Shown one piece after another: positions 7,652-50,187 of a stretch of 64,000 nt of DNA. The translations under genes and the position numbers were made by a program. Below the pieces are notes generated by a model. The model was not told the DNA's origin and made no database searches. It saw only the letters and a list, made by a program, of their open reading frames with translations. Within the stretch, counting starts at the first letter, position 1. The number at the start of each line of letters is the position of its first letter. This DNA is from Oculina patagonica. Taxonomy: Eukaryota. The DNA lies in the NCBI RefSeq assembly GCF_052425735.1, contig NC_135760.1, forward strand, positions 9,300,001 through 9,364,000. Reading direction: 5' to 3'.

Positions 7652-10600
7652 ATGTCGAAGCCCTCATCGAAACTCGCAGGGACAGCAGTTTTGACGATCG
7701 CTCTTCTGTCCTTACAAGGGGCTTTATGGTATTTCCGACCACAACCTGCCGGGAAAGTGCCTTTATTGTATCGCTACAGTGCTGTAAACAGTCATGGTGG
7801 TAATAGAAAGCTTTTGGCTGTGAACTTCAGCATGAATTCAGATCAAAAGTTGTCGTCTGGCAATATAAGGCATCTTGGAACAACAAATGATCAACAGCAT
7901 GTAAGTTGTACACTGCACATTTTCTGATGAAATAGAGAGGATATTGTAACTATACATATACTGTATGGTTGCAGTGATGAAATTGAAAATTTTTATACCT
8001 ATTGAACTTTACAATAAGCAAAACCGAGATTCGAGACTCCAAAATCGCAGTGAATTGAACGTACGATATTTTGAGCTGAGCAGAAAAGTCAATGAAAAAC
8101 GTTCCATTTTAGAATTTTCTGCACGAGCCAAATATTAATTATTAAAGGAGTGTAATTTTCTAATTTAGACATTACATACACTTGTATCTCGAATTTTTGC
8201 ATGACTAAGCAAAACTATCGAGGCTGTTGGTAAAACCCGTGACGGTCAAAAACCCGTGACGGTCAAATTTGGAAAAACACGTGACGGCTATGTCCGTGAT
8301 GGATCCGTGACATATCCGTGACGGATAGATTCTTACATATTATAGATACTTATAGATACAGGCTATAAGACTGAAATCCGTGACGACTGTTTAAGACTGT
8401 TATAGACTGATCAAAGGAGAGGAGAAATGAGTCAATTTCGTGAAATCCGTGACGACTTGTAGTGACTCTCCCTGTTTAAGACTGTTATAGATACTTATAG
8501 ACTGAGTCAATTTCGTGAAATCCGTGACGACTAGAAGTTCCGTGACGGTTTTAGTAGTGACTCTACCTGTTTAAGACTGTTATAGACTGATCAAAGGAGA
8601 GGAGAAATGAGTCAATTTCGTGAAATCCGTGACGATTAGAAGTTCCGTGACGGTTTTAGTAGTGACTCTACCTGTTTAAGACTGTTATAGACTGATCAAA
8701 GGAGAGAATAAATGAGTCAATTTCGTGAAGTCCGTGACGACTAGAAGTTCCGTGACGGTTTTAGTAGTGACTCTACCTGTTTAAGACTGTTATAGACTGA
8801 TCAAAGGAGAGGAGAAATGAGTCGATTTCGTGAAATCCGTGACGACTAGAAGTTCCGTGACGGTTTTAGTAGTTAACCGGTTTTAACCGGTTTTGACCGT
8901 CACGGATTTTGGCAGGCCGTGACGTATAGTGAGCTGCTTTCCGTGACGGCCGTCACAATCCGTGACGGCCTGCCAAATCCGTGACGGCTAAAACCGGTTA
9001 AAACCGGTTAACTCTCTTTAACTTTTCTCTATCTAATGACACAAGAATCATATCAGGCAATTTGTTATAGTAAATAGGGAAAAGACCACTCAACTTAATG
9101 GCGAGTGACCCTCCCTGTTTATTGCAAACAAGAAGCTGCCCGCCAGGAAAAACCCCCTCGTGGGAGGAAACCTGTCCCTTCCCGAATACAGCTTCAAGAA
9201 CTTTGAAGGAGAAAAGTTGAAGGTCAATGCAGAAGATCCTTGGATGCCTCCTCCTGACAGATCCTGGCAAAAGAAATAGGACAATTTGATGAGAATCACA
9301 GGTAGTGGTAGATTATAAGACAAAACCCCCATTACCACCCGGCCACATTGCCTCCGTTTTAATAGCCTGTTTTAATGGTAAGATGGAGGACTTGAACCCA
9401 GGACCCCCGGGTCACAAGACCAGACCATTTACCGCTCTACCACACTGCCTCGGTTTAGCCTGTTATAAGAGAGACATCAGTGGTAAGATGGAAAACTTGA
9501 ATCCGGGACCCCCGGATTACAAGACCAGATCACCATACCGCTAGGCCACATATCCTCCATCTAGCCAGTAACAAGTGAATCAGATAAGGTAAGGTTAAGG
9601 TATTGAATCCGGGACTCCCGGATTACAAGACCAGAAAGCTACGGTTGGCTATTTACAAAGGGTGACCGAGGAGTTGATTTCGGACTTCCGAAAAGCAAAT
9701 CCAGGTAGTGATAAGATGGAGGATTTGAACCCGGGATCTCCGGATCACAACCATTTATCGCTCGGCCACATTGCCTCCGTTTAGCCTGTTATGAGTGAAA
9801 CAGTAGTGGTAAGATGCAGGACTTGAATCCGGGACCCCCGGATTACAAGACCAGATCACTATACCGCTATCAGTGATGACAATTCTCGCTACTGGAAATG
9901 GAAAGAAAAATAATGTCCTGGATATCTTCCTCTGACATCTCCTGGAAAAAAAAGAAGGAAATTGGTGAGAACCATAGGTATCATGAGGCACACTAGTTGG
10001 CTATTCACAAAGGGTGGCCAAGGAATTAGACTCTCGTGCATCCTTTGCAGTATACAGGTGCATCTTCGTCTTCCGGTATGTCTTCCTTTGACATATCCTG
10101 GCATTCAGGATGAAACCAGACTCGACATCCCGTACACTGGAAATAGTAACCATTCTCAGGTCTCTTGCATGAACAAAAGACCTTAAGAGTGAAACGTTCT
10201 TTGATTCCTTTAGGATGATCAGACGTCCTATCTCTATGAGGGAACATAGTCAAAAATCCCTCTTCAAGACAATTAAAGAGGTGTTGTCTCATAGCTCCTT
10301 CATCATACGAAATTAATGTTGGGTCTTTTCCCAATGCCAGAGATAATGCGTTTGCTATTGCATGCAAACCACAAGTGTCGTCTTCGTTAGTTCCTTGGTG
10401 ATCTGCATCCATAATAAGCATGGTAATCTTGTCGTTTTTTAAAGGAGGCCGACCATAGCGAAGAAGATTGCATATGGATTCCTGAGTGTCAAAGCTGACG
10501 CTCGTATAAGCGGAGTCGTAAATTTTCACTTCTTTCCCTCGTTTACAGTCGAGGGTACTTAGCGTGAGCCAGTGTGAGCCGGTGCCTGCTATAGATGTTC

Positions 10601-13600
10601 TGTTCACAATTTGTATAAAGGGATTAGTTGGGCATGGATCGTAGGACAGATTGGACGCTTTTAAGACGGTGTCAAAACCCGAAATATACGGGAATTGACG
10701 CCGCATCAGTATCTGAGCAGCATCCATTATTTTGTCATTTAACCAGGCTGTCCGATGTTGAAGGATTTCCTTTTCTTCCAGTCGTAAGTCAATGCCACTT
10801 ATTTTTAACCAAACACGACCATCGGGCCTTTCGTTGTCTGCGATGTCTTCATCTTCTCCCGGTTCTAGTGTTTTGCTTAGAACACTGTTGTCCTTTTGGG
10901 CTTCGTCTTCCACTTCTTTTTCGTAAACTTTATCAGGGTTTGCTGGAATGACTTCATAGTCGTTCGCCCGAGGGCGTTTTCTCCCCGACTTATTAAATTA
11001 CCTTCTCCCTTTGGTTTTCGCTTTCTTTTTAATTCCGTTAAGTTTATTTTACGCCTCGTCTTGACTTCTAAACCAAGACTTTTTTTAACTGCTATCTTAT
11101 GGTATTTTCTATTTCTTAAAATCTGACGGATAGTCACCGCTAATCTACAATCCGTGACGGCCAAAATAGCTCCTTAACGTCTTAAAATGCTTGTAAAGTT
11201 ATAGAAAAACCTATCTATTTCTTAAAATCTGACGGATAGTCACCGCTAATCTACAATCCGTGATGGCCGTCAAAATCCGTGACGGCTGAACCTGTAACAA
11301 ATCCGTGACGGCCAAAATAGCTCCTTAACGTCTTAAAATGCTTGTAAAGTTATAGAAAAACCTATCTATTTCTTAAAATCTGACGGATAGTCACCGCTAA
11401 TCTACAATCCGTGATGGCCGTCAAAATCCGTGACGGCTGAACCTGTAACAAATCCGTGACGGCCAAAATAGCTCCTTAACGTCTTAAAATGCTTGTAAAG
11501 TTGTAGAAAAACCTATCTATTTCTTAAAATCTGACGGAAAGTCACCGCTAATCTACAATCCGTAATGGCCGTCAAAATCCGTGACGGCTGAACCTGTAAC
11601 AAATCCGTGACGGCCAAAATAGCTCCTAATAGCTAATCTACAATCGGTGATGGCCGTCAAAATCCGTGACGGCTGAGCCTGTAACAAATCCGTGACGGCC
11701 AAAATAGCTCCTAATAGCTAATCTACAATCCGTGATGCTTGAAGTAATGGTCTACAATAGAAAAAAAAAACATCTATTTAAAACCTGTCTCCTTGACCGC
11801 TAATCTAAAATCCGTGACGGCCGTACCTTGTGTCAGCTGCGAGATGTTTGAGAGTGACTAAATATGCCAAATAATGGATAATTGATAATTAGATAATTGA
11901 TTGATAATTGATAATTCCCCGTGACAGGCACGTGACATACACGTGACGGTCCCGTGACGGTCAAGAAAAATATGTCCGGGACGACCGTCACGGGTGCTTG
12001 ACCGTCACGGGTTTTACCAATGCCCACTATCGAAAGTGACAAATTACATGTATTGTATTAAAGGTGACAGTAGGTCAACATGTTCTTTTGGGACTGGGTC
12101 ATAGTCCAGTTTTTGGACTAAGCATCATATAATCTGAAATTATAAAACAAACAGCTCAACCAATGACAAAACAGATTTCGACCATTTGATAATAAGAAAC
12201 CCTTGTCACTTTTCAAGTTGGTACTTAGCAAGTTACACATTCATGTGAAATTGTTATGCACCTATCAATGGTTTGCCCCAGATGCAGGGTGGGGGGAGGG
12301 GGGGTGTCAAATTCCTACCCTTGGCCAGGCCCTTTCCACTTTCTAAGATGGTGGCTGAGGGAACCCTTGTGGATGTCAAAATCCCAACCCAGGTAGAGCT
12401 ACCTATGCCAGGTAGAGCTACATACAGTCAAATTCCCCCTCAACCCGCTGGGGCAAATCATTGATAGGTGCATTACCAGACTTATCATTGTAAACCTGGT
12501 TAGAGGGGGGGGAGGGGGGGGGAAGGTGGGGCACCCTAGCTCCCTGACTTTTTATCCTGGTTTACTTAGCAAGAAACTATGACATTTAACGAAGTAAATC
12601 TGGAAATGATACAAGAAATAATGCTACTTTGTTCTTTTCTGATTGCAGGAATGTTCTGCCTTGCACCATTTAAACAGCTCAGGACAGCGATGTCATTTTG
12701 TCAAGTCAACTGAGAGTTGTCAGATGGATGAAGGATTTATTCAATATGTACAGTTTCCATACTGCTCATTTCCTACAAACCTTGTTCCTCTTGCATTTTT
12801 CTTGCTGGTATGTAAGTAATTTTTTGGATTTGCAATCCTAAAAGACACCTTGATAACTAAAAATTCCCTAAGTGAGCTAGACCAAAAAATTATCTATGAT
12901 TTACAGCCCTAAGTGAGACAACCTTGCCATTCCTATCCCTTTTCATAAGGGAGTTCCCATCCATGGTAAGAAACATCCAAATTTTATACAGGCCAGTTTT
13001 TTAATTCTTCAGTGCCAATCATCTTTCTAATTTTAAGATCTCCTGAAGTAATTTAAATGTCCCTCTTGTTATATATGCAATAAAAAAGTCAGGTAAAATA
13101 AGTCTGCATTTAGCCTAGAGGTAGAGGCCAGGGTGCATTCTGTCTACACACCATGCCAAAGATACGCCAAGTTTTATTACAGGTCTAAGGTCCAGCATTA
13201 TTCATACCTAAAATAAGTCATCTGTAAGGGGTATTGAATGGTTTTTGCGAGCATGCGAGCAGAGAGTTTTTGTTCGCGAGCACGAGCATTGACAAAAGTA
13301 AGTCTTGCAAGCAACGAGCACTTTTCAAAACGCTTCCTCCGTAAAAAACCGAGCGTGCAAGCACTTGCCAAAATATGCGAGCACGAGCAAACAAGCACTC
13401 ACTAAAATTTTGTGAGCATTCTGAGCAGAAGTGTAATTTTGCGAGCATTGCAAAATTTTGATGGACCATTCATGACCCCTTCTGTACGCCAGTTTAAAGG
13501 TGCTGACTACGATCTTACGCCAGTATGCAGCACAATTTTGAATCCATGCCAAAGATCTTCGACATAACTTAAGTAGAATGCAGCCTGGCCTAGAGGCCCA

Positions 13601-32560: not shown

Positions 32561-34336
32561 TGGCTGTCAGACCGAACATGAAGGGTAGGGTTTAAGGGTT
32601 GGGTGGGGTAACAGTGTTCGGTTATGACTTCTAGGTTTTAAAAACTATTTTTTATATATATATTTTGCAAAGCAGCTGGGGTCGTGACGTATGGCCTTGT
32701 CTTGGACGTGAGAAAGGCTCCACCGAGAGCCTTTCTGGCAAATCTTTTAGTTAACGACTTACAAAATATTATTTTACAAAGTCGTTAAGGTATTCCCCCA
32801 CACAATCGTTTTGCATGAAGTCGTGAAAGTTGAATGCAAACATCAACTTAAAAAAAATGGCCGTGAGATGAATTTGTGTATAGGTAAAATCTGGTATACA
32901 ATTTATCCTAAAACCATTTTTTCTATTATTGTTTTCAAAATATGAATGACAAGTGTTTGCAGCAATTGATGTAACTCGATCCTTTGGGAGAAACTTAAAA
33001 GTTTGTGGAGCCAAGGGCCTGTTTTTATGAAGAAAAGATGTCCCTAGAAGGATGGCTACCCTCTCCCCCAAGCCATCTTTTATCGAGCGTTTATATGACA
33101 AAAGTTGTCCCTGCTGTCCGAGCCGAAATTTTGGCCATCTTGGTTTCACGCATGCTCAATATGTCCTGACGTGTCCCTAGCAGGCGAGTTATTAAAGCCA
33201 GAGTGTTTACATGGAAGAAAGTTGGCTTGCTCCCCAAGGTCACCCTGCCTTTAAAGCGAGTGACCCTGTACCCAGGGTCACCCTGCCCCCCCCCCCCCCC
33301 CGAATTAACTTAACTTTGCGATTTTCTCACGTAAACATTTTGCTGCTATTTATAGAGAAATGTATGACAAAATCTCTTGTCCGGGATAGCTCAGTATGGA
33401 GGCGTGACCCTTCCACCAGCGAAAATCTTTCTCTCCAAAAACAGGCCCTGAACACTTTTTGAGTTAACTTGCCCAAAGTCACTTAAATTTTTATCAGGTT
33501 ATATTAACACAAAGCAGTAGTTTTTAATACGAAATCAAAAAATGTTGCATTTGTGAAACCTATCAGAACTTGAGTGATATGATCACAATTTTATAAATAG
33601 AAAAATTGTATTTTTGTTAACTTATTCATTCAACTGTCACATTCAAATTGTATCATAGTTTTAATTTAATTCAAATTTCTTACGTAAGGTGAGAATAATT
33701 ACATTGAACATAAGTCTTATGACTTTTTAATCTCAACTTACTAAATAGAATTATTTAAATAGAGTACTTATTATGTACAATTTTAGATCCACGATCGCCA
33801 AATTAATTATTTTTACTTGATACAGTCATTTTTAGAAATTTTACTTGTCTTAACTAAAGTATAAAGTTACTCAACTTTTATAGTTGTTTTATAACCGTTT
33901 CGTCTTGTTTAGATTTTAGAATAGTTTTTAACTTTTGAAAACAAAAAACTAATTAAACTTTCAGCCTCCAAAGGCAAAAAGGTATTGTATGTTAATGTAA
34001 GGTATTTTATCATTAGAGAACTTGTAGTATTGTAAATTAGTGTTTAACATACTTCTTGTTCTAATAAATATTATTAATCTGTCGGAGTTTGTCCAGAGTG
34101 TGTCTGCGTTCATTATAAATAAATATTGCTGCTAGATCTTTCTCTTTCATAAAATCCAAAGAGAGTTCAGTGAGAGGTGAAAGTTCTTCAAATCTATCAT
34201 CAAAGCGGGCGCTCAATAAACGAGCCAGAAGTTTAGTCGATTACCCGTTGAAAATTTAAACTTGTTTTTTGATGAAGGCACAAGATTTGATCAGCTGAGC
34301 TCCTTGATAACTCTAGACGTTGCATTGCGACGACTT

Positions 34337-34731
34337 AAGCCTGGTTCTCCTATAATTGCCCCGACCGTTTCTATCGCCTCTGTCAGTTCAAAAAGTTTTT
34401 CTTGCGATCCGGGCGATTATATGAGAACATTACATAGACGATCGCTAACGTCTGCGGCGATCACGATCGCTTGCGTAGCTTTCGTATCCCATCTTCGCCG
34501 TAAAACTGCAATAACTGAGAAGATGGGAGGCAACAAGTTTTGCTCTTTTGTCATTGTGCTAGATCTAGGGCTAAAATGATTGTATTTCGCAGGTATTAGC
34601 TCATATACGAGGCGATCGGACGATCATATGCGAACCCCTGATAGATCGCTTCCACTCGCTTCCGATCGTCTCAGTAGTTGCAAACGGTCGAAAAGATAGA
34701 AACGATCGGGGCGATCAAATGAGAACCAGCC
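34337..34731. mobile_element. MITE in the spacer between the duplicated units
   Basis: Imperfect TIR GCCTGGTTCTC..ATTGCCCCGA / TCGGGGCGAT..GAGAACCAGCC; CGATC-rich interior. Confidence 0.65.
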
Positions 34732-35041
34732 GTTTAACGTTTTTTAACCCCTACCCTCCCTTCCCGTCGGTGAATTAATTCACTCGTTCCAGGCCGTGAC
34801 CGTCTTGTTTTTGGCGCTTTGTTGTGACGCATCTTCCGGAATTAGCACAACCTTGAAAGACCTCTCGTAAATTTCACTTTCTATGATTTGTGGTCAGTTG
34901 TATAAACTGATCGAAAGTGAAAATTCACGTCACTTTACCATGTAAAGCTGCTTCTATGAAAGTGAAACAAACTTTGATTGATCATTGCTTACAACACTCC
35001 TCTAAAATTGTCCACGAAGGAAGAGAGAGTTCACAAAAATT

Positions 35042-38000
35042 ATGTCGAAGCCCTCATCGAAACTCGCAGGGACAGCTGTTTTGACGATCGCTCTTCTGTC
35101 CTTACAAGGGGCTTTATGGTATTTCCGACCACAACCTGCCGGGAAAGTGCCTTTATTGCATCGCTACAGTGCTGGGAACGACCATGGTGGTAATCGAAAG
35201 CTTTTGGCTGTGAACTTCAGCATGAATTCAGATCAAAAGTTGTCGTCTGGCAATATAAGGCATCTTGGAACAACAAATGATCAACAACATGTAAGTTATA
35301 CACTGCACATTTTCTGATCAAACGGAGAGGTTTTTGTAACTATACATATACTGTCATGGTGCAGTTATGATATTGCAAATTTTTATACCTATAGAACTTT
35401 ACAATAAGCAAAACCGAGATTCGAGACTCCAAAATCGCAGTGAATTGAACGATATGTTGAGCCGAGCAGAAAAGTCAATGAAAAACGTTCCATTTTAGAA
35501 TTTTCTGCACGAGCCACATATTAATTAAGGAGTGTAATTTTCCAATTTAGACATTACATACACTTGTATATAGAATTTTTGCATGACTAAGCAAAACTGT
35601 CGAAAGTGACAAACTACATGTATTATATTGAAGGTGACAGTAGGTCAACATGCTCTTTTGTGACTGGGTCAGAGTTCAGGTTTTCGATTGAGCAACATGA
35701 AATCGTAAAACAAACAGAACAACCAATGACAAAACGGATTTTCACCATTTGACCCTTGTCCCTTTTAACATTGGTACTTAGCAAGTAGATACACATTTCA
35801 GAGTGGCCTGAAGGGGAAAAATGGGAACTAGAATTTGGGCAAATTTTCACTGGGGAAAATAGGATTTGGGTCACTGGGACTGGGAATCAGAAAACAAATA
35901 AACAATACAACTGAACTGGGATTTGGAAAATCGGGAAAACAATAGACTGGAAAATGGGATTTATACCCCCTTCCTTCCTCCTTTAGGGCTCTCACTCAAG
36001 TGTAATTATTACCAGACTTAACATCATTGTAAACGTTGTCGGAGGTGGGTGGGGGCACCCTAGCTCCCTGAATTTTTATCCTTGTTCACTTAGCAAGAAA
36101 CTATGACATTTAGCAAAATAAATCTGGAAATGATACAAGAAATAATGCTACTTTGTTCTTTTCTGATTGCAGGAATGTTCTGCCTTGCGCCATTTAAACA
36201 GCTCAGGACAGCGATGTCATTTTGTCAAGTCAACTGAGAGTTGTCAGATGGATGAAGGATTTATTCAATATGTACAGTTTCCATACTGCTCATTTTCTAC
36301 AAAACTTGTTCCTCTTGCATTTTTCTTGCTGGTATGTAAGTAGGTTTTTTGGATTTGCAATCCTAAAAGACACCTTGACAACTAAAAATTCCCTAAGTGA
36401 GACCAAAAAATTATCTATGATTTACAGCCCTAAGTGAGACAACCTTGCCATTCCTATCCCTTTTCATAAGGGAGTTCCCATCCATGGTAAGAATCATTAG
36501 TTTCTAATTTTAAGATCTCCTGAAGTAATTTGAATGCCCGTCTTATTATATATGCTATAAGAAGTCAGGTAAAATAAGTCTGCATTTAGCCTAGAGGTAG
36601 AGGCCAGGGTGCATTCTGTCTACACACCACGCCAAAGATACGCCAAGTTTTATTACAGGTCTAAGGTCCAGCATTATTCATACCTAAAATAAGTCATCTG
36701 TAAGGGGTATCGAATGGTTTTTGAATTTTGAATTATCCATGCCAAAGATCTTCGGCATAACCTAAGTAGAATGCAGCCTGGCCTAGAGGCCCATCTGTCA
36801 TCAGGTCAGAGCTTATTCAGGTTTCCCTAGCTTTAAGTGCTGGGTGAACTACTTCCCCTAGCATTAGATTCACGGGTAACTGTTTATACACCTGGGTGGA
36901 CAGAGGCACAGTGAAAGTAAAGTGTCTTGCTCAAGCTCAAAATGTTGTGTGACCCATTAAGCCACCATGCCTCCCATACTAAAATTCAGGAATAGCAATA
37001 TTTTTAGCAAATAATTTGTTTTATCTAGATTGTATAATACACTGTAGTAGTCAGGTGCCGCGGCAATCATATTTCTAAACATTTTTTTTAGTTTTTATGG
37101 TTGGCATTCCTCTTTATAACTCTTGGATTGACAGCGGATGATTAGTAAGTTGCAAAAATTAATTATGGTTCCTTTTAATTACTTGATTTATTAAACACTG
37201 TTAGTATTTATTCAATTTCAGCATTTCTGATGCGGCATTTATTCGAGGGTGGTGTTTATTTTAAAATAATATTCAAGTACTAAATTTTCAGTTGCAGATT
37301 TAAGTAAAATACAGACCAGCATTGACATTATTACAAATTACATTTTAGCTAGTTTGTGACAAGATTCTAGCCTGTGTGAAAATCTGTATTTATTTAGAAA
37401 CCCTTTTGTTTGAATTGAAGTTGCAAACACAAGGGTCTTTATCAGAAGAAAATTAGTTCTTTAAAGTCATAACACACTTCAGGACAAACAGTAATCCTTA
37501 ATGACATAATAATTTTGTTATTAGATTATTTAAACATGAACATTATTGTTTTGTTTATTTTTATATTTGTATTTCATGTTTAGCTTCTGCCCTTCTTTGC
37601 ACGTGATCTCAAAGACATTACGAATCAGTCAGAATATTGCTGTATCCTTTTACTTTAGTGAGAAATTCTCTGCTGGATGCAAACAACACAATACAATCAC
37701 TGTGGCAGATGTAGGCAAGGAGCATAGGGAACATGATCCCACCACCCCTTACCTGGTTGCGAAATGGCCACTTAATTTTTTTTTAATTTCGAGCCCTATC
37801 TTCAGTTCCCCCTCCTCTTATTACAGTAGATCATCTATCACATATTTAGCACACTTCAGGCAGCTGTAATCTCCTATCAAATTTGGGCCAACAGGCTTTA
37901 AGGGAGGTCACCCTGTAGTAAATTTGTTTTAACCACTATTGAGTTTGAATATCAATATATAATTATTTCAATTTTGTTTAATATTTTACATTCTGTGAAA

Positions 38001-41000
38001 TTTGATTTCCTTGACTTTATTGTAAATAAAAGGGTGTTACATTTCTAGCCTTTGGCAATGGTGCGCCTGATATTTTCAGTGCCCTAGCAGCTTTCTCTCA
38101 CAGCAGAAATCAAAATGGAGTACAGCTCGGGATACAGGCCCTTTTTGGTAAGACAATAATATTACCTGTAAGTAGTACATATTCAAATCAGGGGAGTTTT
38201 TTCGGTGATCTCCAGAATAATCAAGGTTGAGGCATGCGCAAGTGCCAGAGAGTGAGGTCTGATGACACTTTTGGTTAATATTGTAGGCATGCAATGCATG
38301 CAGAGAGCTATGAAACTGATGCTCTTTGTCTCCAAGCCATGAGACCCATACAGCCGGAGCTTATCCCGGTTTCAGTAGCATTAAGCGACTAGGAGTATTG
38401 CTACTCCCCCCTGGATGGGATGCTAGTCCATCGCAGGGTTACCCCCAGCAGTAAATTCGCCGGTACCCATTTGTACACCTGGGTGAAGAGAGGCACTGTG
38501 AGAGTAAAGTGTCTTGCCCAAGAACACAACGCAGCGCCCCGGCTAGGCCACGACCCGGGCCGTTCGACTCGGAGTCGAGCGCGCTAACCATTAGGCCACC
38601 GCGCCTCCCCTTTGCACACAGATCTATAATGCTAGCTTTCATAATTAAGCAGTTCAGAGTTTGTTAAAGAAAGCACAGTTTGTGCACTTCACCTTTTACT
38701 TGAAAACGCCTCTCTGTTTCTTTGCAAACGCTTTCTCCTTTAAATATATATAACCTGCAATCAGGCATTCTTCGGGAGCGGGAATGGTGCAGTAGTGAGA
38801 GCACTCGCCTCCCACTAATGTGGCCGAGTTTGATTTCCAGACCGGCGTCTTACATGTATGTGGGTTGAGTTTGTTGTTGGTTCTCGTCATCGCTCTGAGG
38901 GTTTTTCTCTGGGTTCTCCAGTTTTCCTTCCTCCAGAAAAATCAACAGTTCTAAATTCCAATTCAATCGGAAACAGTGGACGAAGAGCCAGCCTGTGAAC
39001 TTGCCACTGCAAATTCCCATTTGTTTATTTATTTATTTATTTATTCTTTTTTTTTTCAAATTTTCTGCATCTTTATAATACACTTAATATATATCCATAT
39101 TTATGACTGTCTTGCAGAATGCGAAATAGGAGGTATCCTACCTTAAGCCAACAAATTCACCCACTCCATTGGTTGTTGGGTCATAGACTTTGTTTGTAAA
39201 TTTCACTGACCAGTGTTGCTCGTGCCTCAATTTTTCTGTAAATCATTTTATTCACCTGATGCGAAGCAGTTGTATTCTCATAGAGACCTTTGATTTTCTT
39301 TATATCCACTTTTGGCAAGTCTGTTCCTGAGTCTAGAAACTAAAAAGGCTGCCACTTTTCAATGACTTTTAAAACTCCAGTTTCTATAGGCAAATGTTTT
39401 GCAGGTTGGCCCCAATCATTTTCCAATCTTCATCAGTTTGCTTTATAACTGTTGATGTGGTATACCTATATTCGTACAATTTGGTAGGTAACAATTTTTT
39501 TTATCAATTGATTTATTTGTTTTTTTGTTTTTGTTTCCACGTTTCAGGTGCTGGTATGTTTGTGACAACAGTTGTTGTTGGTGCTATATCCTTTGTCTCA
39601 ACTATCACGTTGACAACTCGTCCATTTACCAGGGATGTCTTATTCTACCTGGGAGCTGTTTCATGGACGTTCATCACATTATATAAAGAAAACATAACAT
39701 TAGGAGAGTCAATAGGTAATTAACTCTCAGCTTGTTCCCTGATCATTATGGCTATTTATGTCTGCACAATTTATAGGCCTTCACTGCTAGCTGTATCAGA
39801 ACTCTCATTTCAGGAGTGTAGCACAAATTACATGTATCCATCATAAAGGAGATGGCATGTAAAGAAATCTGTGAGAGATCCATTCAGTTTCTCTGGTTGA
39901 TTGTTGCTTGGTTTTGAATTTTTTGCACAACCAACCAGATACAATACACAGATCTGGACCAGGTTGTTCAAAGCATGATTATGATAATTCAGGACTAGCG
40001 TGAATTTTGATTTCATTCTTTTAACTTTTCTGGTTTTCTGTTTATATTTTCTCTCCTCCAGTTAAGGACTGATGTCAAACTCCAAAGAATATGAGCACTA
40101 AAAACACCTTTAACTTTTATTCCTGGGTTGGTGTTAATCAGCTTTCGAACAACCAGCCCTGTACAGGGCGCGACAAAAGTGCTGTCCGATAGCCCGGGGC
40201 TAGTGGAATTATCCGTCGGGCTAGCGTATTCTGATCACGGGTTGCCCGACGGGCAAGCAACACACGGGCAATAAACATTGTTTTTTTTATGACAACCTTC
40301 AGAAATAAATGTGCATCAGACAAATTAGACTAAAGGGAAAAATTTGGGGCTCAAAAATGTGACTCACTGCATCCTTGGAGACAAAAACCGTACTGGTTTT
40401 ATAGTCGCCAACTTGAACGTGGCGACTATATTTCTCTCTGTTAAGATGAGTAACGGCCATTTTCTGAGGAATTTTGTCTTTCCAGAAAATTATATTGGAA
40501 GATCTTTGCTTTTAAAGCATTCACAATAAGAAAAGAAGTCATAGTTCTCCAATCCATGGTATTGCTTTGCCGTAAAGTACTCCATCACCTCGTAAAACTT
40601 GCAAATGGCTGACCGTTTTTGAAAACGCCCCAAAATGCATTGCAGGCATTGGGTACGTCATGTATGCCTATGAATTATGTCTCTTCAAATGTATCCTTCA
40701 GGATCCTTCATATTTGCAATCTTCTACATTAAGCTACAAAGTTAGTTGCCACAAAATCGTTATGTGTTTTTTTTTTTAATTCTTGTGGTAAGATTATTTT
40801 CTTTTCTTTTTGAATATTTATGTATTTATTGTCTCCAAAGGAAGAAATTATGCAAATTACCTTTGGGCTAGCTTCTCAGAGCTCTGGGCTAGTATGAAAA
40901 AATAACAGCTGCCCGAAGGGCAAGCTGCCTTTTTTATTTTTGTCTCACCCTGCCTGTAGATCAAGCTTTGTCTTGAATCAGTTTGGAATCTCAGACGTCT

Positions 41001-44000
41001 GAGGACTTATCAGAGCTGAAAATCACTTTCTATAAATTCTTAAGTCAGTTCCTAGGGAAATAGTTGGGTCAGAAACACAATTATTTCCGACTTTTGGTGT
41101 TCTAGTGCGGGTACCTATCCCCCACCTGGGGGCTGCAAGGCTGATTCAGTAAGAAAAAGTTTTGAGAGCTTCCAGCATTAAAATCCATATAACATGACCA
41201 TTGATGAGCCTTTTAAAACATATGTCACATTTATAAGAAAAGGGTAATTGATTACTTTTTTTCTTATTTTGTCAATAGGTTTCATAGTATTTTATGTAGC
41301 GTACATTCTTGTTGTCATTTTTGGCCACTATATCTACCAAAGATGGAAAAGAAATTCAGGGCGTGTTGAAATTAAAGCTGAATCCCCAGAATCAGGTACG
41401 TCCATAATGTAATTGGAGTAACTGCAGAGTACCCTGCCACACAAGCCCATTACTAAATTGAGATGTCTACATGGTACACAGTCGGTATTAAAGCATTCTT
41501 GTTTATGATGCTTCTGAGATGTTCGCTTTTAAACCATTGGAGTCTTTTGAGTCCCAATGACTGAATTGGCAGTGGACTTACTAAATGTTGAACACTGGCA
41601 ATCACAAAGATCTTTACAGTTACCAAGCGCTATGGTTAAAAACAGGAAGAATATTAAGGTAATCACCCCCCCCCCCCCCTTCCCAGAAAAAGAAATAACA
41701 CAAAGGGCCTCCTTAGTCATTTCTAACTACCGGTACATTGTATTGCTCCAGAAAATATCCATATCCCTCCCACAGAAGGTTTTAGGTTTGAATCCCCCTC
41801 ACCCCTCTGGAAATGTCAGTTAAACCCCATACTTGTGAGATCCCAACTCGTTTGGAATGTGTCCAATGACCTTCCGTGGGGTGGGTATGGATAAGTTTTC
41901 TAGAACTGCACATTCGCCATCCATTTCTTTTAGTATTTCTCTGTGTTCATCTTAAAGTGTCTTAAGTTTAATCCTTAACGTATTTATATCATTGTCAGGT
42001 CATTATGCAGTGTATACCTGGGCCGGGTTGTTCAAAGCACGATTAAGCTAATCCAGGATTAGTGTGAAGTTTGATTTCAGTTTTTTAACTTCTCATTGAG
42101 GTTTTCTGTTTATATTTTCTGTCCTCCATTTTTGACATCGACTAATCTCAAGCTCCACAAAACATAAGCAATAAAAACACTTTTATCCACGAGAAATTGA
42201 ACCCTGGATAAACTTTTAATCCTGGGTTAGTGTTAAACAACTGGGTTAGTGTTAAACAGTGTGAACAACCCGGCCCTGATAAAAGTTATAACATATTTTA
42301 TTTTCATATCATAGACATATATGCCTTGTCTGAACCTTCACTCTTTTTATGTTTTAAAAAGAATCCAATGGCGACTTTCTGGAGTCAGGTGGCCGTGCTG
42401 GAACAAGAAAACTTATACATGCAGCAAGGGGGAGTAATGAATCAGTAAACGCTGTGACTGTTAACGCAGAAACAAATGACATCAATTGGGAAAACACAAT
42501 TGCACACCATTCTCACCACACACTTTCAGGTAGGGTGTGTAATTATCACAATAAGTAATATTTATTCACACTGTAATAAGGCAATATTTCTATTTCTTGT
42601 AGATGCTCTTATTGCAAGTGAAAATACCTTGCTTGGTCCAGCAATTCACAGTGCTCCAATTCCTGCAAGAAAGGAGTCCACAAGTTCAGGTATTTATAAT
42701 AAACCAGATTTTTAAAGTTAGTAAGTAATTAAGATTCTTCATCAGTTGAAGTCAATTATTTAGTCAATCAGTCAGCTAGCCAGTCGGTTGGTCAGTATGT
42801 CAGTCAGTCATTCAGTCAGTCAGTCAGACAGTCAAACATTTAGTGTAGCAGTCAGTCAATCGGTCAGTCAGTCAGTTAGTTAGTCAGTCAGTCAGTCAGT
42901 CAGACAGTCGGTCCGTCAGTCAGACAATCAGTCAATCAGTTGGCAGTCAGTCAGTCAGACAGAGAGACAGTCGGTCAGTTGGTCAGTCAGTCAGTCAGTC
43001 AGTCAGTAGGTTAATCAGTCAGACAGTCAGTCGGTCAGACAGTCAGTCGGTCAGTTAGTCAGTCAGTTGGTTAATCAGTCAGTCAGACAGTCGGTTGGTC
43101 AGTCAGTCAGTCAATCAGTTAGTCAGTCAGTCAGTTAGTCAGTCAGACAGCTGGTCAGTCAGTCAGACAAATGCTCAGTCAGTCAGTAGTAGTAGTAGTA
43201 GAGTAGGTCAGTCAGTCAGTCAGTTAGTCACACAATCGGGTGGCAACTTCATAATCTGTGTCAAAATTAATTTAATGTACGGTTTATCAGTAGCATTGAA
43301 AAAGTATGATTCATGCCTCTTTGTTTTGCATTTTTTTTTTTAAATTTAGAACTACAGTATTTAATTACTATATGGAACGACAGTGACTATTTACTCATAG
43401 AAAGCTCAAGCTTTTAGTTTTTATTATTATTAGGCACTGTTAGAAACGTTGTAATAATAATGAACTTTATTAGTTAATGTGATACTCTTGTAATAAAGTT
43501 AATGTTAATCATGTCTATTTTGTTTCTGTTTGTTTCTTTTTCCCAGATGAAGACTTGCCTCTTCTGGGTGGAAAACGTAAAGTTAGTGCATGGAGAAAAT
43601 TTTTGCAGGGCCTGGAACCCATCGATCGAGAAGACTGGTGTAATAGCAACTTTTTCTGGAAATTCTTTATGATTGTAAAGGTACGAACTTCCTTATTTGT
43701 CCGGCGAAGAGACTCCCATATAAATAGGGCGGGGATGTTCATCCAAAATTGTGAAAAGAACCCCTAAAAGAGACCAAACTGGGCGTAGCTGAAGCTCTCT
43801 TCAACCCCTAAAAGATACCAAAGTATAACGAGCGGTCCGTACGAACAGTGTAGTGTTTGAGAGAGTTGTCACGTGACTCGTCACCAGTCGAGCATGTATG
43901 TCTGGCAATTGTCAGACGAGACACGTCTGTCATGTTATTTGAGAACATGATCTGTCTAAAGAAGAATTTCACCCAACACGTTCACAGCGGTTTTTTGATA

Positions 44001-47000
44001 TCTTGCAGTAAATAAGGGAGGTAGTTAATGGCATCACTTAGCAAACTATTGATTCTGTTAAAAAAAACATAAGCACATCACCTCAGTGACTAAAGAAGGT
44101 AGCTTACTTACTGAAAATAATTCGAGTTATCCTGCCACGTTCTTTTATAACGTGATCTGTCTAAAGAAGAATTTTCCCCAACACATTGAAAACGGTTTAT
44201 CAGATCTTGCAGTGACTAAGGGAGGTAGCTAGTTAAATGGCATCACTTAGCAAACTATAAATTTTGTTGAAACAAACTTAAGAAAATCACCTCAGTGACT
44301 AAAGAAGGTAGCTTTTGTACAGAAAATAATTTGAGTCAGCCTTGTGACATTCTTCAATAATGATGTCCGTATGAACTTGCTACCTGGCTGACGTCTCAGC
44401 AAGCTCTCATTTTAATTACTTACTGCTAGCTAGCGTGACGTTTATCCTTTATAAGTTTTAAATGTCCTCTCATTTTACTTCCGGTATCTCCGGAATCCAT
44501 TCTGCTTGCGCGATTACTCCCGTGAATCTGTTGCCATCTCACAGAGTTGGGCACTGGCTATAAGTTTTTTATCAGTTTATTTTGGCGCAGCACATTTATC
44601 TTATGTTGCGATGACATTTTTCCCTATAAACTGCCCAGAGCTCAAATATTAATCTCTTACTGCTAGCTTGCGTGACGTGTATCCTTTATAAGTTTTAAAT
44701 GTCCTCTCATTTAACTGCCGGTATCTTCCACTTAGAAGTCTTACATCAAGTATTTTGTTTGCGTTATTACTCGCGCGAATCTGTTAATATCTCACGGAGT
44801 TGTACACTGGCTGTAAGTTTTTTTATCAGTTTATTTTGGTGAAGTACATTTATCTCATGTTGCAAGTACCTTCTTTCCCTCAATTAATTGCCCGGAGCGC
44901 GTTCGAGCCTTGTCGCGAATTTTTTAATCCATTGCTTTAATTAGAACATTCGTGGACAATAACAAGCCAGTTCCAGTCTAATTTGCATATGTATGTCTAC
45001 GTGCTTGTTCCACTTAGCCTGTGTACAGCCGTCCCGCTCCGCTCAAAAAAATCGCGGAGGGACGTCCCCTCTGCGATTTTTTTGAGCGGAGCGGGACGGC
45101 TGTACACAGGCTAGTTCCACTTGACCGCGCAATTTGTTTACATCTGGCGTAGCGTTCGCTTCCCCACTAAACTAACTCCATTAGTGTAGTGTACAAACAC
45201 TACACTAAAAAATGGAATTTATTTTTATACAGTTTTTATGGTGCAACCCTAAACGAGATCTTGACAGCTAAAAATATTGGAATTTTTCGCAGAACACCCT
45301 ATAAAGTGAGACCAAAAATTATACCCTGGGGGCCCCGACGATTCAACGAGGAGCATGGTAATAAAAAAGGTAGAGTGATGTTCCGAGAATTCCAGTAAAA
45401 ACAAGAAAAGAGGAATACCTCTGAAGGTATTCCATTTTCCCAAAATCTTTTAGTGAAGTGGACCGTTCCATTTAAGAGCAAATTTAATTTTGCACAGGAA
45501 CTACTGGTTTCTCCAAACAAATGGAAAGCACCCTTTATCTCATACCCCTACCCCCACTACCAGATACAGAGTGGGATCAAGTTACAAATTCATCCTTTGT
45601 GATGGGGGGGGGGGGGGATGTGGAAAGAAACTGAAAATCTGTTCACTGAGGCTCATGTTTTGTTTGCAGGCTCCTGCAGTATTTTGTCTTAATCTCACTG
45701 TACCAGTTGTGGATTACGACAAAGAGAATCATAACTGGAACAAGTGGCTAAACGTCTTACACTGCATAACAATGCCGGTCTTTGGTGTCATGGCAACACA
45801 AGGTAAGTACCTTGTGTAAATATTTAATAACATGCTCGTAAAACACTATCATACACTGCTGTTCTGCCGAGAGACTCGACGTTCTAGATGAGTAAAGGTG
45901 AGTGTTGGTAGTAAAGTAAAAAAAATCCAACACTAGCTGCAGACAAGGAAAATCTTAACCCTGTTGCAATGTTTGTGTAATCGTTGTGTAATACTGCTAT
46001 TTTAGAGCGGTTTTCACTTGAGTGTCGAAAGTAAATTGCGTTTGCTTTGGTTTTGCATTACTACGCTTACTGATTGGATTAAAAATCTCGCGCCACTTTC
46101 TCAGCCAATCAGAACTAAAACCAAAACCAATTGTGACTCGCTCACGCACGTTTTCTGGCGCTTCAAGTTTTGATTGGTTCACTGGATTGTCTGTGTCCTT
46201 TGTGATTGGCCAGAGTAATTACTTTGGTTTTGGTTTTACGACACTCAATTGAAAGCTGCTCTATCTCACGAATCGATTTACAACATGGGCTCATAGCTGT
46301 TTGATATAACTGGAATTAATTCCTTTTTTTCTTTGGCAACGGGAACAATTTTTTATTGTATTTGTCGATATAGCCTATTCGTAGTTACGATAATCAGAAT
46401 AAAAAGAATTTATGAAAGCCTTATCAAACCCACTGTTTCAAAAGTACTTTTTCACATTTATTGCAAACATCAAATGCAATTCGTCATTCTTTTTTCCCCC
46501 ACTATGTTCATTATTTTGATTTTAGTTTAGTTCAATGAACTGTGTATGGAAACATTCTGATGATATTGTCTTAACCAAAAATCGACTTTCACAGCCTTTC
46601 AATTTTTTAACGCAAAAGAACGCGAAAGAAACAGCGAGTTTGAAGTAGAGGGGGTGGGAGGGTGGGGGCTAGCTCCCTCCACCCACTCCCTCGCGTTTCT
46701 CTACCATCAACGAACGAAGACGAGAAAAAAGAGGGCTGTCAACAGTCGGTACTCAAAAGTCCTCAAAAGTTTTATTCTCAGGTAACATCATAAATAAGTG
46801 ATGTATTCCGTTACTTCCAGTTCATGAGAAAGACAAACTGAATGGATGTTTTTAAGAAGAATAATAACCTTGGTTCGATGTTTTCTCGTAGCCGGCAATG
46901 TCATGATTGGTGAACGTTTTCCTGCCTGGGCGTTGGCGCTTTGTGGAGGAATAGCTCTAGCTGTGATTGTTGCCATGACAACTAGAAGTGACAAGCAGCC

Positions 47001-49569
47001 TTGTGGTCATTTTGTAAGTACTCCACAAGAATAACTTAAAGGGATCGAGGCAAAAACATTATTCAATAGAGGTTGTTGCGAGACGCACAAATTTTAGTGC
47101 GTCGGCCCAGACTGTAGATCAAGAGATCTGGGGTCGAACCTGGCATTGATCTTTTTTGTTTGTTCATCGCAAGGAATTTACTCTCGTAGAGCCATTGTTC
47201 AAATTAGTATCGGAAAATTGTTAGTTTGACCTGCAATGGACAAATTAGTATCGGAAAATTGTTAGTTTGACCTGCAATGGACAAGCATCCCATCCAGGAA
47301 GGAGTAGCAATACGATTGGTCATTGTTTTCCAAATGACGAATACCGCTAACCAAAAGATAAATCACTCAGTGAAAAACGTAAAGTTGGTTTTGCTTATGC
47401 TCATCCACTGATCAGCGATTTATCCAGTGGATAGTGTTATCTGCTTTTGAAGAACTGGGGAATGGCCATTTTATATTGCAGGCCACTGTACTTGTGATTT
47501 TTTTTTTCAGTTCCATAACTGCAAAAGTGTTTGACATCTTAGTGCCACTAATGTATTACTCATATTATCACGCTTCAATCTCTCTCTAGCTATTTGCGTA
47601 CGTGGCGTTCGTGGTATCAGTAATCTGGATCTACACGACGGCAAACGAGATTGTTAACCTGCTTCAGGTACAGTTGTTGGAGTGAAATAGCATATTTACC
47701 CTCTTGAATCAGTTGTTTACTGTAATTGTACATATCTTTATAATGTGAAGGGGTATCCATTATTTAAGTACATTACTTAAAAAAAAAAACTTCATTAAAG
47801 TTGTATCAATCATGTTATCTTGTAGACGTTTGGCATCGCGTTTGGTTTGAGCGACGCAATTCTTGGCCTCACTTTTCTTGCCTGGGGTAACAGTATTGGT
47901 GGTAAGTCTTGCATTTCTCTCAATCTTAGTAGGCGACTGGGGGGGGGGGGGGACAGTCTGTCTTCACCCTTAGTTCGCCGAGGTAAAGGTAAAGTCTGCT
48001 TTCGAGCCAAATGGCCAATCAGGTCATAGCTTATCCCGGTTTCAATAGCATGAAGCGACTAGTAATATTTCTAATCCTCCCTAGATGGGATGCTAGTCCA
48101 TCGCAGGGTTAGCCCCAGCATTAAATTTGGCGGTACCCATTTATACACCTTGGTGGAGAGAGGCACTGTGAGAGTTAAGTGTCTTGCCCAAGAACACAAC
48201 AGTGGCCCCGGCCAGGGCTCGAACGCTGACCGCTCGATGTGGAGTCCAGCGCGCTTACCATTAGACCAACGTGCCCCCCTCCCCCTTAGTTCGCTGAGGA
48301 AGAAACTAAATACGCGAAAGGAAAAAATTGCACTCCAAAGTTCCTCTTTTCCCGAGCCTCTGCCCCAACCCTATGCTGCCAATTTTTTCTTTCGCTTATT
48401 CCTTTTTGCTTCTGGCTCACACAACTGAGGTAAAAGATGAACTGCTCGTTGATCTACCGACAATGTACCAAAGATAACAAGACAAAACTTACTCTTGTTT
48501 TATTTTTCAGATTTTGTGTCAAACACAGCTATGGCAAGACAAGGATTTTCTCGCATGGCCGTGTCAGCTTGCTTTGGAGGCCCTTTGCTAAGTATCCTGT
48601 GATATTCAGCAGTGATACACTGATTCACTGCTAATTTCTTGTCACCGTTTTGTAAAATACAGCACAACTTGTAAAACTGACATCAGAACTACGCACCTTT
48701 CTTTTAAGGCTTATATTTGACCTTAGCTGAAATTAATCTGCCCATGGTATTATATTTAAAGTCAAAGCAAAATCGTTCTCGTTCACGCGAGAAAGGAACG
48801 GTGTAAATGGGGCTTTTGCCATGTTTGCAGAAAACGCGGTTACATGCTAGGGGCATAAGAAAGCCTCCAAAACAAAGTGACTTCAACCAGTCAAGCTCAA
48901 AACCGTCTTTATTTTGGATGTTCCGTATGCTTATAGCTTGCCATTAGGCGATGTAAACCATATGTAAATTGTCAAAATGAACTGTCGGAGAATTTGTGTG
49001 AGGTTTCTTTGTGGTACGTTTAAGATTGAAAGAGCTTCCTTAACTTCTCTCCAGATATGTTGTTAGGTATCGGTATATCATGCACTGTTGTCACGGTGTC
49101 ACGTGGACATGCAATACCGGTAAGTATATCTGTGTCTGCTTTAGCCTTTTCACAGCCTTTTATTTTCTCGTATTTTTGTTCGACCTTTGAACGTGCGAAA
49201 AAAAATCGCAAGAGAACTGGGCACGAGCGCAAAAGAAGAAGCGCGAGGGGTAGGGATAGGGCACTAGACCCCACCCTTGCTTTCCGCGTTTGCTGCTTTC
49301 AGTAGACGTCTGCTTTAGAGAGGAGTTCCATAAGTAAGAGTTCAATACAACATGCTAACACCCTTTTTGTCATTATCTCTGTCCAGTTACGTCACAGATA
49401 TCACCAGTACCAGATCTCCGCGGGATTTCTCGCCGCTAGTCTCAGTTCGTCCGCCATCTTAATTCCTTTAATGGGATTCAAAGTACCCCGGATGTACGGC
49501 GTGTACCTTATAGTTTTGTACGTAGCTTACTTGACGGTGTCTATAGCATGCGAGTTTAAACATATTTAA
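35042..49569 (+). CDS. SLC8B1: NCLX-type Na+/Li+/Ca2+ exchanger (CCX/SLC8B1 family), tandem copy 2, 17 exons, ~681 aa
   Basis: Exons 35042-35290, 36173-36331, 37092-37144, 37584-37641, 38033-38147, 39548-39715, 41279-41395, 42362-42529, 42603-42689, 43547-43680, 45670-45802, 46892-47013, 47590-47667, 47826-47901, 48511-48591, 49055-49119, 49387-49569 (2046 nt). Keeps family-like FCP, LFY, GNSIGDFVSN and ACFGG motifs. Confidence 0.94.
37642..38032 (+). other. U12-type intron 4 of NCLX copy 2
   Basis: Donor GTATCCTTTT; branch TTCCTTGAC at ~38007-38015; AAG acceptor. Confidence 0.92.
38329..38609 (-). mobile_element. tRNA-derived SINE specific to copy 2
   Basis: Minus-strand head gggaggcgcggtggcctaatggttagcgcgc and conserved body ttcttgggcaagacac; CTTTG duplication. 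The same family occurs at ~30229-30478, ~47983-48280 and ~13595-13790. Confidence 0.87.
40164..40952. mobile_element. hAT-like non-autonomous element specific to copy 2
   Basis: CAGGG.G.GACAAAA / TTTTGTCTCACCCTG ends; CCTGTA duplication; empty site in copy 1 at ~19045. Confidence 0.8.
45015..45113. mobile_element. Near-perfect 99-bp hairpin MITE with 8-bp TSD
   Basis: TAGCCTGTGTACAGCCGTCCCGCTCCGCTC..GAGCGGAGCGGGACGGCTGTACACAGGCTA, flanked by GTTCCACT on both sides. Confidence 0.88.
46003..46263. mobile_element. MITE in intron 11 of copy 2
   Basis: TIR TAGAGCGGTTTTCACTTGAGTGTCG / CGACACTCAATTGAAAGCTGCTCTA; not seen in copy 1. Confidence 0.72.
48592..49054 (+). other. U12-type intron 15 of NCLX copy 2
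   Basis: Donor GTATCCTGTG; consensus branch TTCCTTAAC at 49036-49044. Confidence 0.88.
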
Positions 49570-50187
49570 TGGCTGTCAGACCGTGAAGAGTAGGGTAGGT
49601 AGTGTAACAGTTTCCTTCTTGGTGAAGCCGGTTCGGTTATAACTTCTAGGTTTTACAAACTATTTTTTAGTATTTTGCAAAGTAGCTAGGGTCGTTAAGT
49701 ATGCCCTTCTCTTGGACGCGACAAAGGCTCCAATGAGAGCCTTTGTGTTGATTCTTTTAGTAAACGACTTTTAACAAAATATTATTTTACAAAGTATCAC
49801 AGGGGTATTTCCCAACACAATCGTGAAAGTTGAATGTAATCGTCAACTTTAAAATAATGGCCGTGAGATGATTTTGTGTTTAGGTAAATTTCGTATACAA
49901 TTTATCCTAAAGTTTTTCAAACCATTTTTATTGTTTCCAAAATATGAATGACAAGTGTTTGCAAGCAATTGATGTAACTCGATCTTTGGGAGAAACTTGA
50001 AAGTTTATGGAGCCGAGGGCCTGTTTTTATGAAGAAAAGATGTCCCTGGTAGAATGGTTACCCTCTCCCCCAAGCCATCTTTTATCGAGCGTTTATATGA
50101 CAAAAGTTGTCCCTGCTGTCCGAGCCGAAATTTTGGCCATCTTGGTTTCACGCATGCTCAATATGTCCTGACGTGTCCCTAGCAGGT

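Follow-up and report, generated by a model that had tools for sequence, protein, structure and literature searches.

A stop-free Ulp1-like protease–PHD frame in a transposon of the coral Oculina patagonica is probably the remnant of a Mutator-like transposase

Mutator-like elements (MULEs) have target-site duplications (TSDs) of 8–11 bp and terminal inverted repeats (TIRs) of 14–500 bp (Dupeyron et al. 2019, PMC6446971). For Ginger1 and Mutator transposases, the Ulp1 and PHD domains have been aligned with each other; the Mutator elements that encode Ulp1 are from hydra and lancelet, and possible roles in transposition or repair have been discussed (Bao et al. 2010, PMC2836005). The closest described systems are the MuDR-type elements of Hydra magnipapillata and Branchiostoma floridae (Repbase Reports 2008/2009, via PMC2836005), which have the same combination of a MULE DDE core with Ulp1 (and PHD), also in an invertebrate host. 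We analysed a 64,000-nt stretch of the genome of the stony coral Oculina patagonica (contig NC_135760.1, positions 9,300,001–9,364,000; hereafter the window, in whose coordinates all positions are given unless a locus is named), which contains at 8222–12025 a bounded 3.8-kb insertion with a long stop-free frame for a Ulp1/SENP-like protease and a PHD finger. An earlier note on this DNA had described it as a transposase-less element with an apparently intact protease–PHD module. We consider it very probable that the element arose by internal deletion within a stony-coral MULE family and is non-autonomous; its frame is a fragment of a transposase gene, not an intact gene. Set against the Hydra and Branchiostoma elements, to which it is likened by description and not by Repbase sequence, the window copy would be a deletion derivative that lacks the DDE core.

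Ginger1 transposons of Hydra (e.g. Ginger1-9_HM; PMC2836005) likewise carry C-terminal Ulp1 and PHD domains on a cut-and-paste transposase in a cnidarian, but their DDE core is Gypsy-integrase-like, not of the MULE type, and their TSD is different. Spectre, a MULE of aphids, likewise has an 8-bp TSD and short TIRs (74–76 bp), whereas its open reading frame (ORF) encodes a C2H2 finger, no protease or PHD has been reported for it, and its hosts are arthropods (PMC6446971). The MULE-related Rehavkus encodes a PHD finger and has a minisatellite before the 3′ TIR (PMC6446971), and the window element has minisatellites of 105 and 151 bp inside its two ends; Rehavkus, compared here by description only, differs in its 9-bp TSDs, in its arthropod and annelid hosts, and in that no Ulp1 is mentioned for it. 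An arthropod MULE survey (PMC13359780) makes no mention of Ulp1, PHD or SWIM.

The insertion and its target are delimited by the following features:
8214–8221, no strand: left copy of the TSD, ACTATCGA, a perfect 8-bp direct repeat.
12026–12033, no strand: right copy of the TSD, ACTATCGA, the same 8 bp as the left copy.
8222–8264, plus strand: TIR at the ORF-downstream end, with two 17-nt AAAACCCGTGACGGTCA units and 96% identity to the end of the related locus L001.
11840–12025, minus strand: 5′ end of the element, including the TIR at 11983–12025 and a AATTATCAATT-rich block, homologous to the 5′ ends of loci L006 and L023.
35580–35620, plus strand: empty target site in a paralogous duplicated segment, found by joining the flanks in silico.

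The TIR arms proper (8227–8264 and 11983–12020) are 38 nt long and 95% complementary. At each end 5 nt (GGCTG and GGGCA) lie outside the common TTGGTAAAACCCGTGACGGTC core, which means that the GG start is correct. When the flanks were joined, the resulting 41-mer matched 35580–35620 with 2 mismatches and a single ACTGTCGA. The two sites belong to a surrounding duplication of ~27 kb, whose copies are 92–98% identical, and the presence of the empty site in the second copy shows that the insertion is real and younger than the duplication. The element was thus inserted into one duplicate after the duplication, and no second copy of it was found within the window. The clean 8-bp TSD, the GG-starting TIRs and the empty paralogous site described in the earlier note all stand. 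The duplication itself is a tandem one (7000–33400 versus 34300–50300), with an offset that falls from ~27.4 kb to ~17.0 kb along its length; the shrinking offset indicates several insertions into the first copy, one of which is the studied element. The DNA runs also contain a joint that skips from 8213 to 12026, derived from either the paralogue or an empty allele.

The coding remnant lies on the minus strand:
10026–10985, minus strand: stop-free frame of 319 codons (10029–10985) with its stop codon (10026–10028), remnant of the 3′ part of a transposase gene.
10314–10811, minus strand: Ulp1/SENP-like protease, clan CE, C48-type, with H138, D157, Q197 and C205.
10038–10175, minus strand: PHD finger, C4HC3; Pfam PHD 24.0 bits at a cut-off of 24.

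We built a family profile from the window ORF and 34 relatives (35 sequences). The protease has His, Asp, Gln (oxyanion) and Cys in the canonical order (codons at 10572–10574, 10515–10517, 10395–10397 and 10371–10373, respectively), in columns that are invariant or nearly so across the profile. The PHD finger keeps all eight zinc ligands, with PHD-like spacing and in columns conserved to the same degree. What had been reported of the ~320-codon frame, of its catalytic residues and of its PHD ligands is therefore correct. Against protein structures, the profile matched the whole catalytic domain of SENP1 (1.6e-10), Ulp1 (1euv; 6e-10) and SENP8/NEDP1 (6e-9), and a group of PHD fingers (PHF2, SHL, DIDO1, Spp1 and BPTF) at 1e-11 to 1e-13, with PHF2 at 2.4e-13. 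Single-sequence searches gave less: the window ORF alone matched only PHD structures in the PDB, plus a marginal Ulp1, and the Pfam search proposed in the earlier note recovered the PHD finger but no Peptidase_C48 (PF02902) in the window ORF at E≤1, although that domain passes its cut-off in the relatives P0107, P0016 and P0018.

An AlphaFold model made with the 35-sequence alignment reached a mean pLDDT of 89.5, compared with 37 when the 11 close homologues were used alone. The top Foldseek matches of the model were Ulp1, NEDP1 and SENP1/2/3/5/7, with probability 1.0 and target-normalised TM of 0.6–0.69 (1euv, E 1.6e-6 and TM 0.61; NEDP1, TM 0.66–0.69). The window frame is thus predicted to have the Ulp1/SENP fold. 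Structures of SENP (acting on SUMO) and of NEDP1 (acting on NEDD8) fitted about equally well, so that the substrate may be SUMO, NEDD8 or something else. The best PHD matches of the profile are readers of H3K4me3. The finger keeps the Trp before FH, and one cage position that is aromatic in PHF2 is Glu here; judged from these residues, it may read the H3 tail.

The closest relatives of the frame were metagenome-derived ORFs of 60–89% identity. An exhaustive profile-free search with one related protein, P0001 (527 residues), as the query (E≤1e-3) returned 4334 related proteins; the Ulp1–PHD module is C-terminal in proteins of up to 1208 residues. In P0107 (950 residues), Pfam identified a MULE transposase domain (PF10551; 32.8 bits, cut-off 27.6) together with Peptidase_C48 (46.3 bits) and PHD (34.4 bits), and the MULE matches of P0016, P0017 and P0018, at the equivalent position, are full-length though below threshold. 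The first 560 residues of P0016 aligned to both P0107 (E 9e-81) and P0018 (5e-91), and the P0016 alignment spans the motifs SYDTTF, ..TDxE.. and TTNxSEGFN and runs into the SWIM finger. A SWIM finger C-terminal to the DDE core is common in MULEs, if not universal. Here it passed the Pfam cut-off of 19.6 bits in P0017 (21.4 bits) and was matched in P0152 with 30.5 bits, while the motif CxCx(n)CxH is present in P0001, P0004 and L001.

The same order could be followed towards the coral-type sequences. The coral-type fragment P0113 starts with WKEVPxD, the stretch that comes after the last DDE motif in P0016 and P0017, and the contig that holds it, L007, is colinear with P0016 residues 263–859, running unbroken from the DDE half through SWIM and protease to PHD. 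Scanning metagenomes with the 23-nt terminal core gave 17 further loci. In one of them, L023, the 5′ terminus and AATTATCAATT block agree with those at the right end of the window element, and ~500 bp inward lies a decayed fragment of the DDE region with SYDTTF, which matches P0016, P0018 and P0107. On these sequence matches, elements with these ends appear to descend from a MULE whose transposase was fused to a SWIM finger, a Ulp1-like protease and a PHD finger.

The remnant in the window starts within the SWIM finger:
11104/11105, no strand: internal-deletion breakpoint, where coding homology ends and the subterminal repeat starts.
11000–11104, minus strand: C-terminal half of the SWIM finger and remnant of the basic linker (YHKIAVKK...KRKRKPKGEG), in another frame than the ORF.
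10990–10997, no strand: 8-bp indel by which the SWIM remnant is shifted out of the protease frame; its position is ambiguous by ~3 nt.

DNA homology to all four loci compared (L001, L005, L007 and L008) ends exactly at 11104, beyond which the 151-bp repeat is found. In the relatives the protease is preceded by a basic linker and a SWIM finger, CSCx6CYH, of which only the part from the His onward survives in the window. The first in-frame ATG of the stop-free frame is residue 87, inside the protease fold and past its N-terminal strands and first helix. The DDE core is absent, as had been noted: four related long transposases, whose N-terminal and DDE parts served as tblastn queries, gave zero matches in the window. 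The module is thus intact in that it is free of stops and keeps its key residues, but it has no ATG before residue 87 and is frameshifted relative to the SWIM remnant. Of the possible substitutions in the frame, 4.8% create a stop, and at 1–3% decay the chance of finding none is 0.25–0.63. With a 25–63% chance of a stop-free frame, its intactness is no evidence of function.

We propose that the autonomous element encoded, in this order, an N-terminal DNA-binding region, the MULE DDE core, the SWIM finger, the basic linker, the Ulp1/SENP-like protease and the PHD finger. A deletion would have fused the 5′ subterminal repeats to the middle of the SWIM finger, leaving the last ~40% of the gene, and the 8-bp indel would then have divided this remnant into two frames. 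Both termini are kept, as are the subterminal motifs: the 9-mer CCGTGACGG occurs 24 times in the window, each time inside the element (shuffles expect 0.13), and these motifs, located in the minisatellites next to the two ends, are presumably transposase-binding sites. The copy would therefore be mobilisable in trans by a full-length transposase from elsewhere in the genome, and would have been inserted by such trans movement at a staggered 8-bp target cut. The long stop-free frame probably reflects the youth of the copy and past selection on its autonomous ancestors rather than a function here. In the full-length enzyme, the PHD finger would probably tether the transposase to histone H3 tails, and the protease would probably act on factors of chromatin, repair or silencing, or on the transposase, and free them of SUMO or a related modifier. 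The earlier suggestion of a deletion derivative of a poorly classified family is supported as to the deletion, with its breakpoint at 11104/11105, but not as to the family, which can be assigned to the Mutator superfamily. On this reading the window copy is a dead member of a kind of element described since 2008–2010.

Some observations weigh against the deletion of a MULE as the origin of the element, or against its being dead. None of the recovered copies is full-length and autonomous, with both termini and a whole transposase, and the link between the coral family and MULEs runs through the partial contigs L007 and L023 and through relatives at ~30% identity. The Pfam MULE cut-off was passed by one related protein only. 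The TIRs, at ~40 nt, are short for a MULE; the 38 nt of the window arms are fewer than in many MULE TIRs, though inside the range of 14–500 bp. All catalytic and zinc-binding residues are kept, so a truncated product could have residual activity. Finally, runs guessed to be RNA, although none of those listed for this stretch is recorded as such, contain small low-depth contigs at 10014–10189 and 9851–10071; the two such runs gave no contigs over the rest of the ORF, an absence that contigs cannot prove.

The family includes other deletion forms. Its consensus terminus is GGGCNTTGG, and the terminus GGGCNTTGGTAAAACCCGTGACGGTCAA, found in L001, L006 and the metagenome loci, is conserved in 19 loci. 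L016 is a complete form of 128 bp with the 8-bp TSD AGAAGTGA, and L018 a complete form of 738 bp with the 8-bp TSD CCCAAGCG, both with a GGGC terminus; TSDs of 8 bp are thus present in all three independent insertions (window, L016 and L018). L006, a further deletion form, retains the 5′ end and, of the protease, the part that follows its middle, and contigs of the DNA runs X1 and X2 contain a shorter form without the whole interior, in which 8966 is joined to 11837. The family grades into miniature inverted-repeat transposable elements (MITEs). In the DNA runs, sequencing depth was 200–1300 over the element ends and 17–22 over the ORF interior, against ~48 for the flank contig. This contrast indicates that end-only derivatives have been amplified, whereas the ORF-bearing form is about single copy, and that the ORF is therefore no help to amplification. 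The search by termini for an autonomous partner, proposed in the earlier note, thus yielded the 17 metagenome loci and the DDE fragment of L023 but not a full-length copy. Within 10 kb to either side, neither L001 nor L006 has transposase parts related to the family, only one terminus of L001 was within reach, and for P0002 no contig placement was found. L006 has, 8 kb downstream of its related element, an unrelated piggyBac-type fragment (DDE_Tnp_1_7) with a zf-RVT ORF (L006:18091–20006).

In plant MULEs the protease is encoded by a captured gene of its own, and the element frequently has no transposase. In the coral family, by contrast, Ulp1 is fused in frame to the transposase, although the plant elements (Kaonashi/KI-MULE of Arabidopsis and CUMULE of melon; PMC2836005, PMC2528002) likewise belong to the Mutator superfamily and carry a Ulp1-like protease. 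The earlier note had offered as its other proposal a cargo element that delivers a chromatin-reading deSUMOylase, a plausible anti-silencing factor. In such a reading the enzyme would be free-standing, would shield the family against SUMO-dependent silencing and would be expressed from the retained 5′ end. The stop-free frame with all its catalytic residues and PHD ligands would fit such a proposal, as would the retention of the native 5′ end with its presumed promoter, the dN/dS value given below and the contigs of presumed RNA that touch the 3′ end of the ORF. However, in P0016, P0017, P0018, P0107 and L007 a single frame runs colinearly through transposase and module, which is hence not captured cargo. 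The same colinearity rules against cargo of the Pack-MULE type, a captured fragment of a host gene, unrelated to the transposase gene, between MULE ends. In addition, the upstream remnant is truncated and frameshifted, and the copy lacks a usable start codon, its first in-frame ATG lying within the protease fold; the ORF-bearing form has a depth of 17–22 where single-copy flanks have ~50, while end-only forms are abundant; and the recent changes described below look neutral and fall at conserved residues. We thus regard a cargo role as very unlikely. The element matches a described kind as what is essentially a simple internal deletion, and no convincing transcript of it was seen.

The ratio dN/dS between the window frame and L001 (89% nucleotide identity) is ~0.2, and 0.07–0.25 for more distant copies. 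Such low values are expected to reflect ancestral constraint in functional transposase lineages and to be uninformative on the window copy itself. Changes within a near-identical copy in the run X2 give another picture: in the frame, the X2 contigs differ from the window at five positions, of which 4 are nonsynonymous and 1 is synonymous. The nonsynonymous ones include D157E (at the catalytic Asp position), S164N (S164 is invariant among 11 close homologues) and R179Q, seen over 10371–10577. X1 and X20 have one more nonsynonymous variant, the fifth, which is G315R of the PHD finger. With 5 of 6 changes nonsynonymous, neutrality is favoured over a ratio of 0.2 by a likelihood ratio of ~8, a binomial estimate from small numbers and from an X2 copy that may or may not be orthologous. 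The recent changes in the near-identical copy thus look neutral. The X2 copy, which may be the same locus in another colony or a second copy, does not have the 8 bp at 10990–10997.

It is highly unlikely that the remnant is transcribed from the retained 5′ end, that its translation begins at a non-AUG or internal codon, and that the resulting free Ulp1-like/PHD protein acts on chromatin in trans, be it as an anti-silencing factor or as a modulator of the family's transposition. Were it so, we would be seeing the early birth of a host or selfish regulator from the tail of a transposase.

Truncated transposases made by deletion derivatives do regulate transposition in other superfamilies, as P-element and Ac products illustrate. 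By analogy, the window remnant, with its PHD finger and most of its protease intact, might start at a non-AUG or internal codon and act as a dominant inhibitor or modulator that competes on chromatin through its PHD finger. It would do so, however, without the DNA-binding, DDE and SWIM parts needed to compete at the element ends. No convincing transcript of it was seen, the ORF-bearing form is single copy, and the X2 copy is changed at conserved residues. We consider a regulator of this kind exceedingly unlikely.

The origin of the element in another superfamily with 8-bp TSDs (Zisupton/KDZ, Merlin, hAT or P) is extremely improbable: the 8-bp TSD and short GG-initial TIRs would suit it, Zisupton likewise has an 8-bp TSD on an unrelated type of transposase (PMC12730594), and the P-element-type protein P0097 ends in the same Ulp1–PHD module, but proteins with the SWIM–linker–protease–PHD order match only MULE in Pfam, with no hAT or P match even at E≤10, the DDE fragment of L023 behind the same terminus matches those MULE proteins, and 8 bp lies within the MULE range (PMC6446971). 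This last point also removes the pointer to Merlin or Zisupton that the earlier note had seen in the TSD. Zisupton/KDZ was rejected as no related long protein has a KDZ match, even at E≤10, and Merlin as the related proteins have no IS1016-like DDE match and an 8-bp TSD alone is non-diagnostic. We found no literature on Zisupton together with Ulp1.

If the element is a deleted MULE, a misleading signal is cleared: the 'intact' protease–PHD frame is a young relic of a fused transposase and not purposeful cargo. For annotation, the coral MULE family may be recognized by its GGGCNTTGGTAAAACCCGTGACGGTCAA terminus, 8-bp TSD, CCGTGACGG motifs and minisatellites, and by deletion forms down to 128-bp MITEs. 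In cnidarians and other invertebrates, Ulp1-type proteases with PHD fingers have repeatedly become attached to transposases, and to those of several superfamilies; the reason is better sought in a full-length member. In P0097 (1208 residues), the Ulp1-like and PHD tail accompanies matches to a P-element transposase helix–turn–helix and to a TNP-like RNase H, so that the module has been joined to at least two transposase superfamilies.

The remainder of the element consists of repeats and non-coding segments:
8265–9013, no strand: 3′-side subterminal repeat region with many CCGTGACGG motifs.
8503–8873, no strand: 105-bp minisatellite, 3.5 copies, within the 3′-side subterminal region.
8871–9013, no strand: palindrome with 39-nt arms, within the same region.
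9014–9219, minus strand: non-coding stretch 3′ of the ORF, 74% identical to L001.
9220–9981, minus strand: segment missing from L001, with five degenerate ~105-bp units at 9373–9858.
11105–11839, no strand: 5′-side subterminal repeat region, with CCGTGACGG motifs.
11149–11627, no strand: 151-bp repeat, 3.2 copies, within the 5′-side subterminal region.
11547–11737, no strand: 85-bp repeat, within the same region.

The ~105-bp tandem units at 9373–9858 have a core that resembles a tRNA T-arm (reverse complement ...GGGTCCCGGATTCAAGTCC...). Such cores at ~9644–9677 and ~9718–9750 are high-copy in the DNA runs and are also present in the runs guessed to be RNA. Neither ARAGORN nor Rfam identified a tRNA or any other RNA family within the element. 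The segment 9220–9981 is probably a nested insertion resembling a short interspersed element (SINE), or a local expansion.

In P0107, residues 26–128 match CG-1, the DNA-binding domain of CAMTA (26.5 bits, cut-off 23.5); P0016, P0017 and P0018 have no CG-1 match. CG-1 domains bind CGCG/CGTG boxes, and CGTG is contained in the family's subterminal motif CCGTGACGG (window motifs at 8237–12010). It is possible, judging from the two sequences, that a CG-1 domain of the P0107 type and CCGTGACGG form a pair of transposase and binding site.

In the query protein P0001 (L002:170–1847, also in L003 and L004), a RING-like Cys/His cluster stands where the DDE core would be, and the SWIM, Ulp1-like and PHD parts follow it. 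The protein is 99.8% identical in three independent samples, and its open frame starts just past tttttag, which resembles a splice acceptor. P0001 may come from a gene of a different coral, chimeric or domesticated, or may be one more deletion form.

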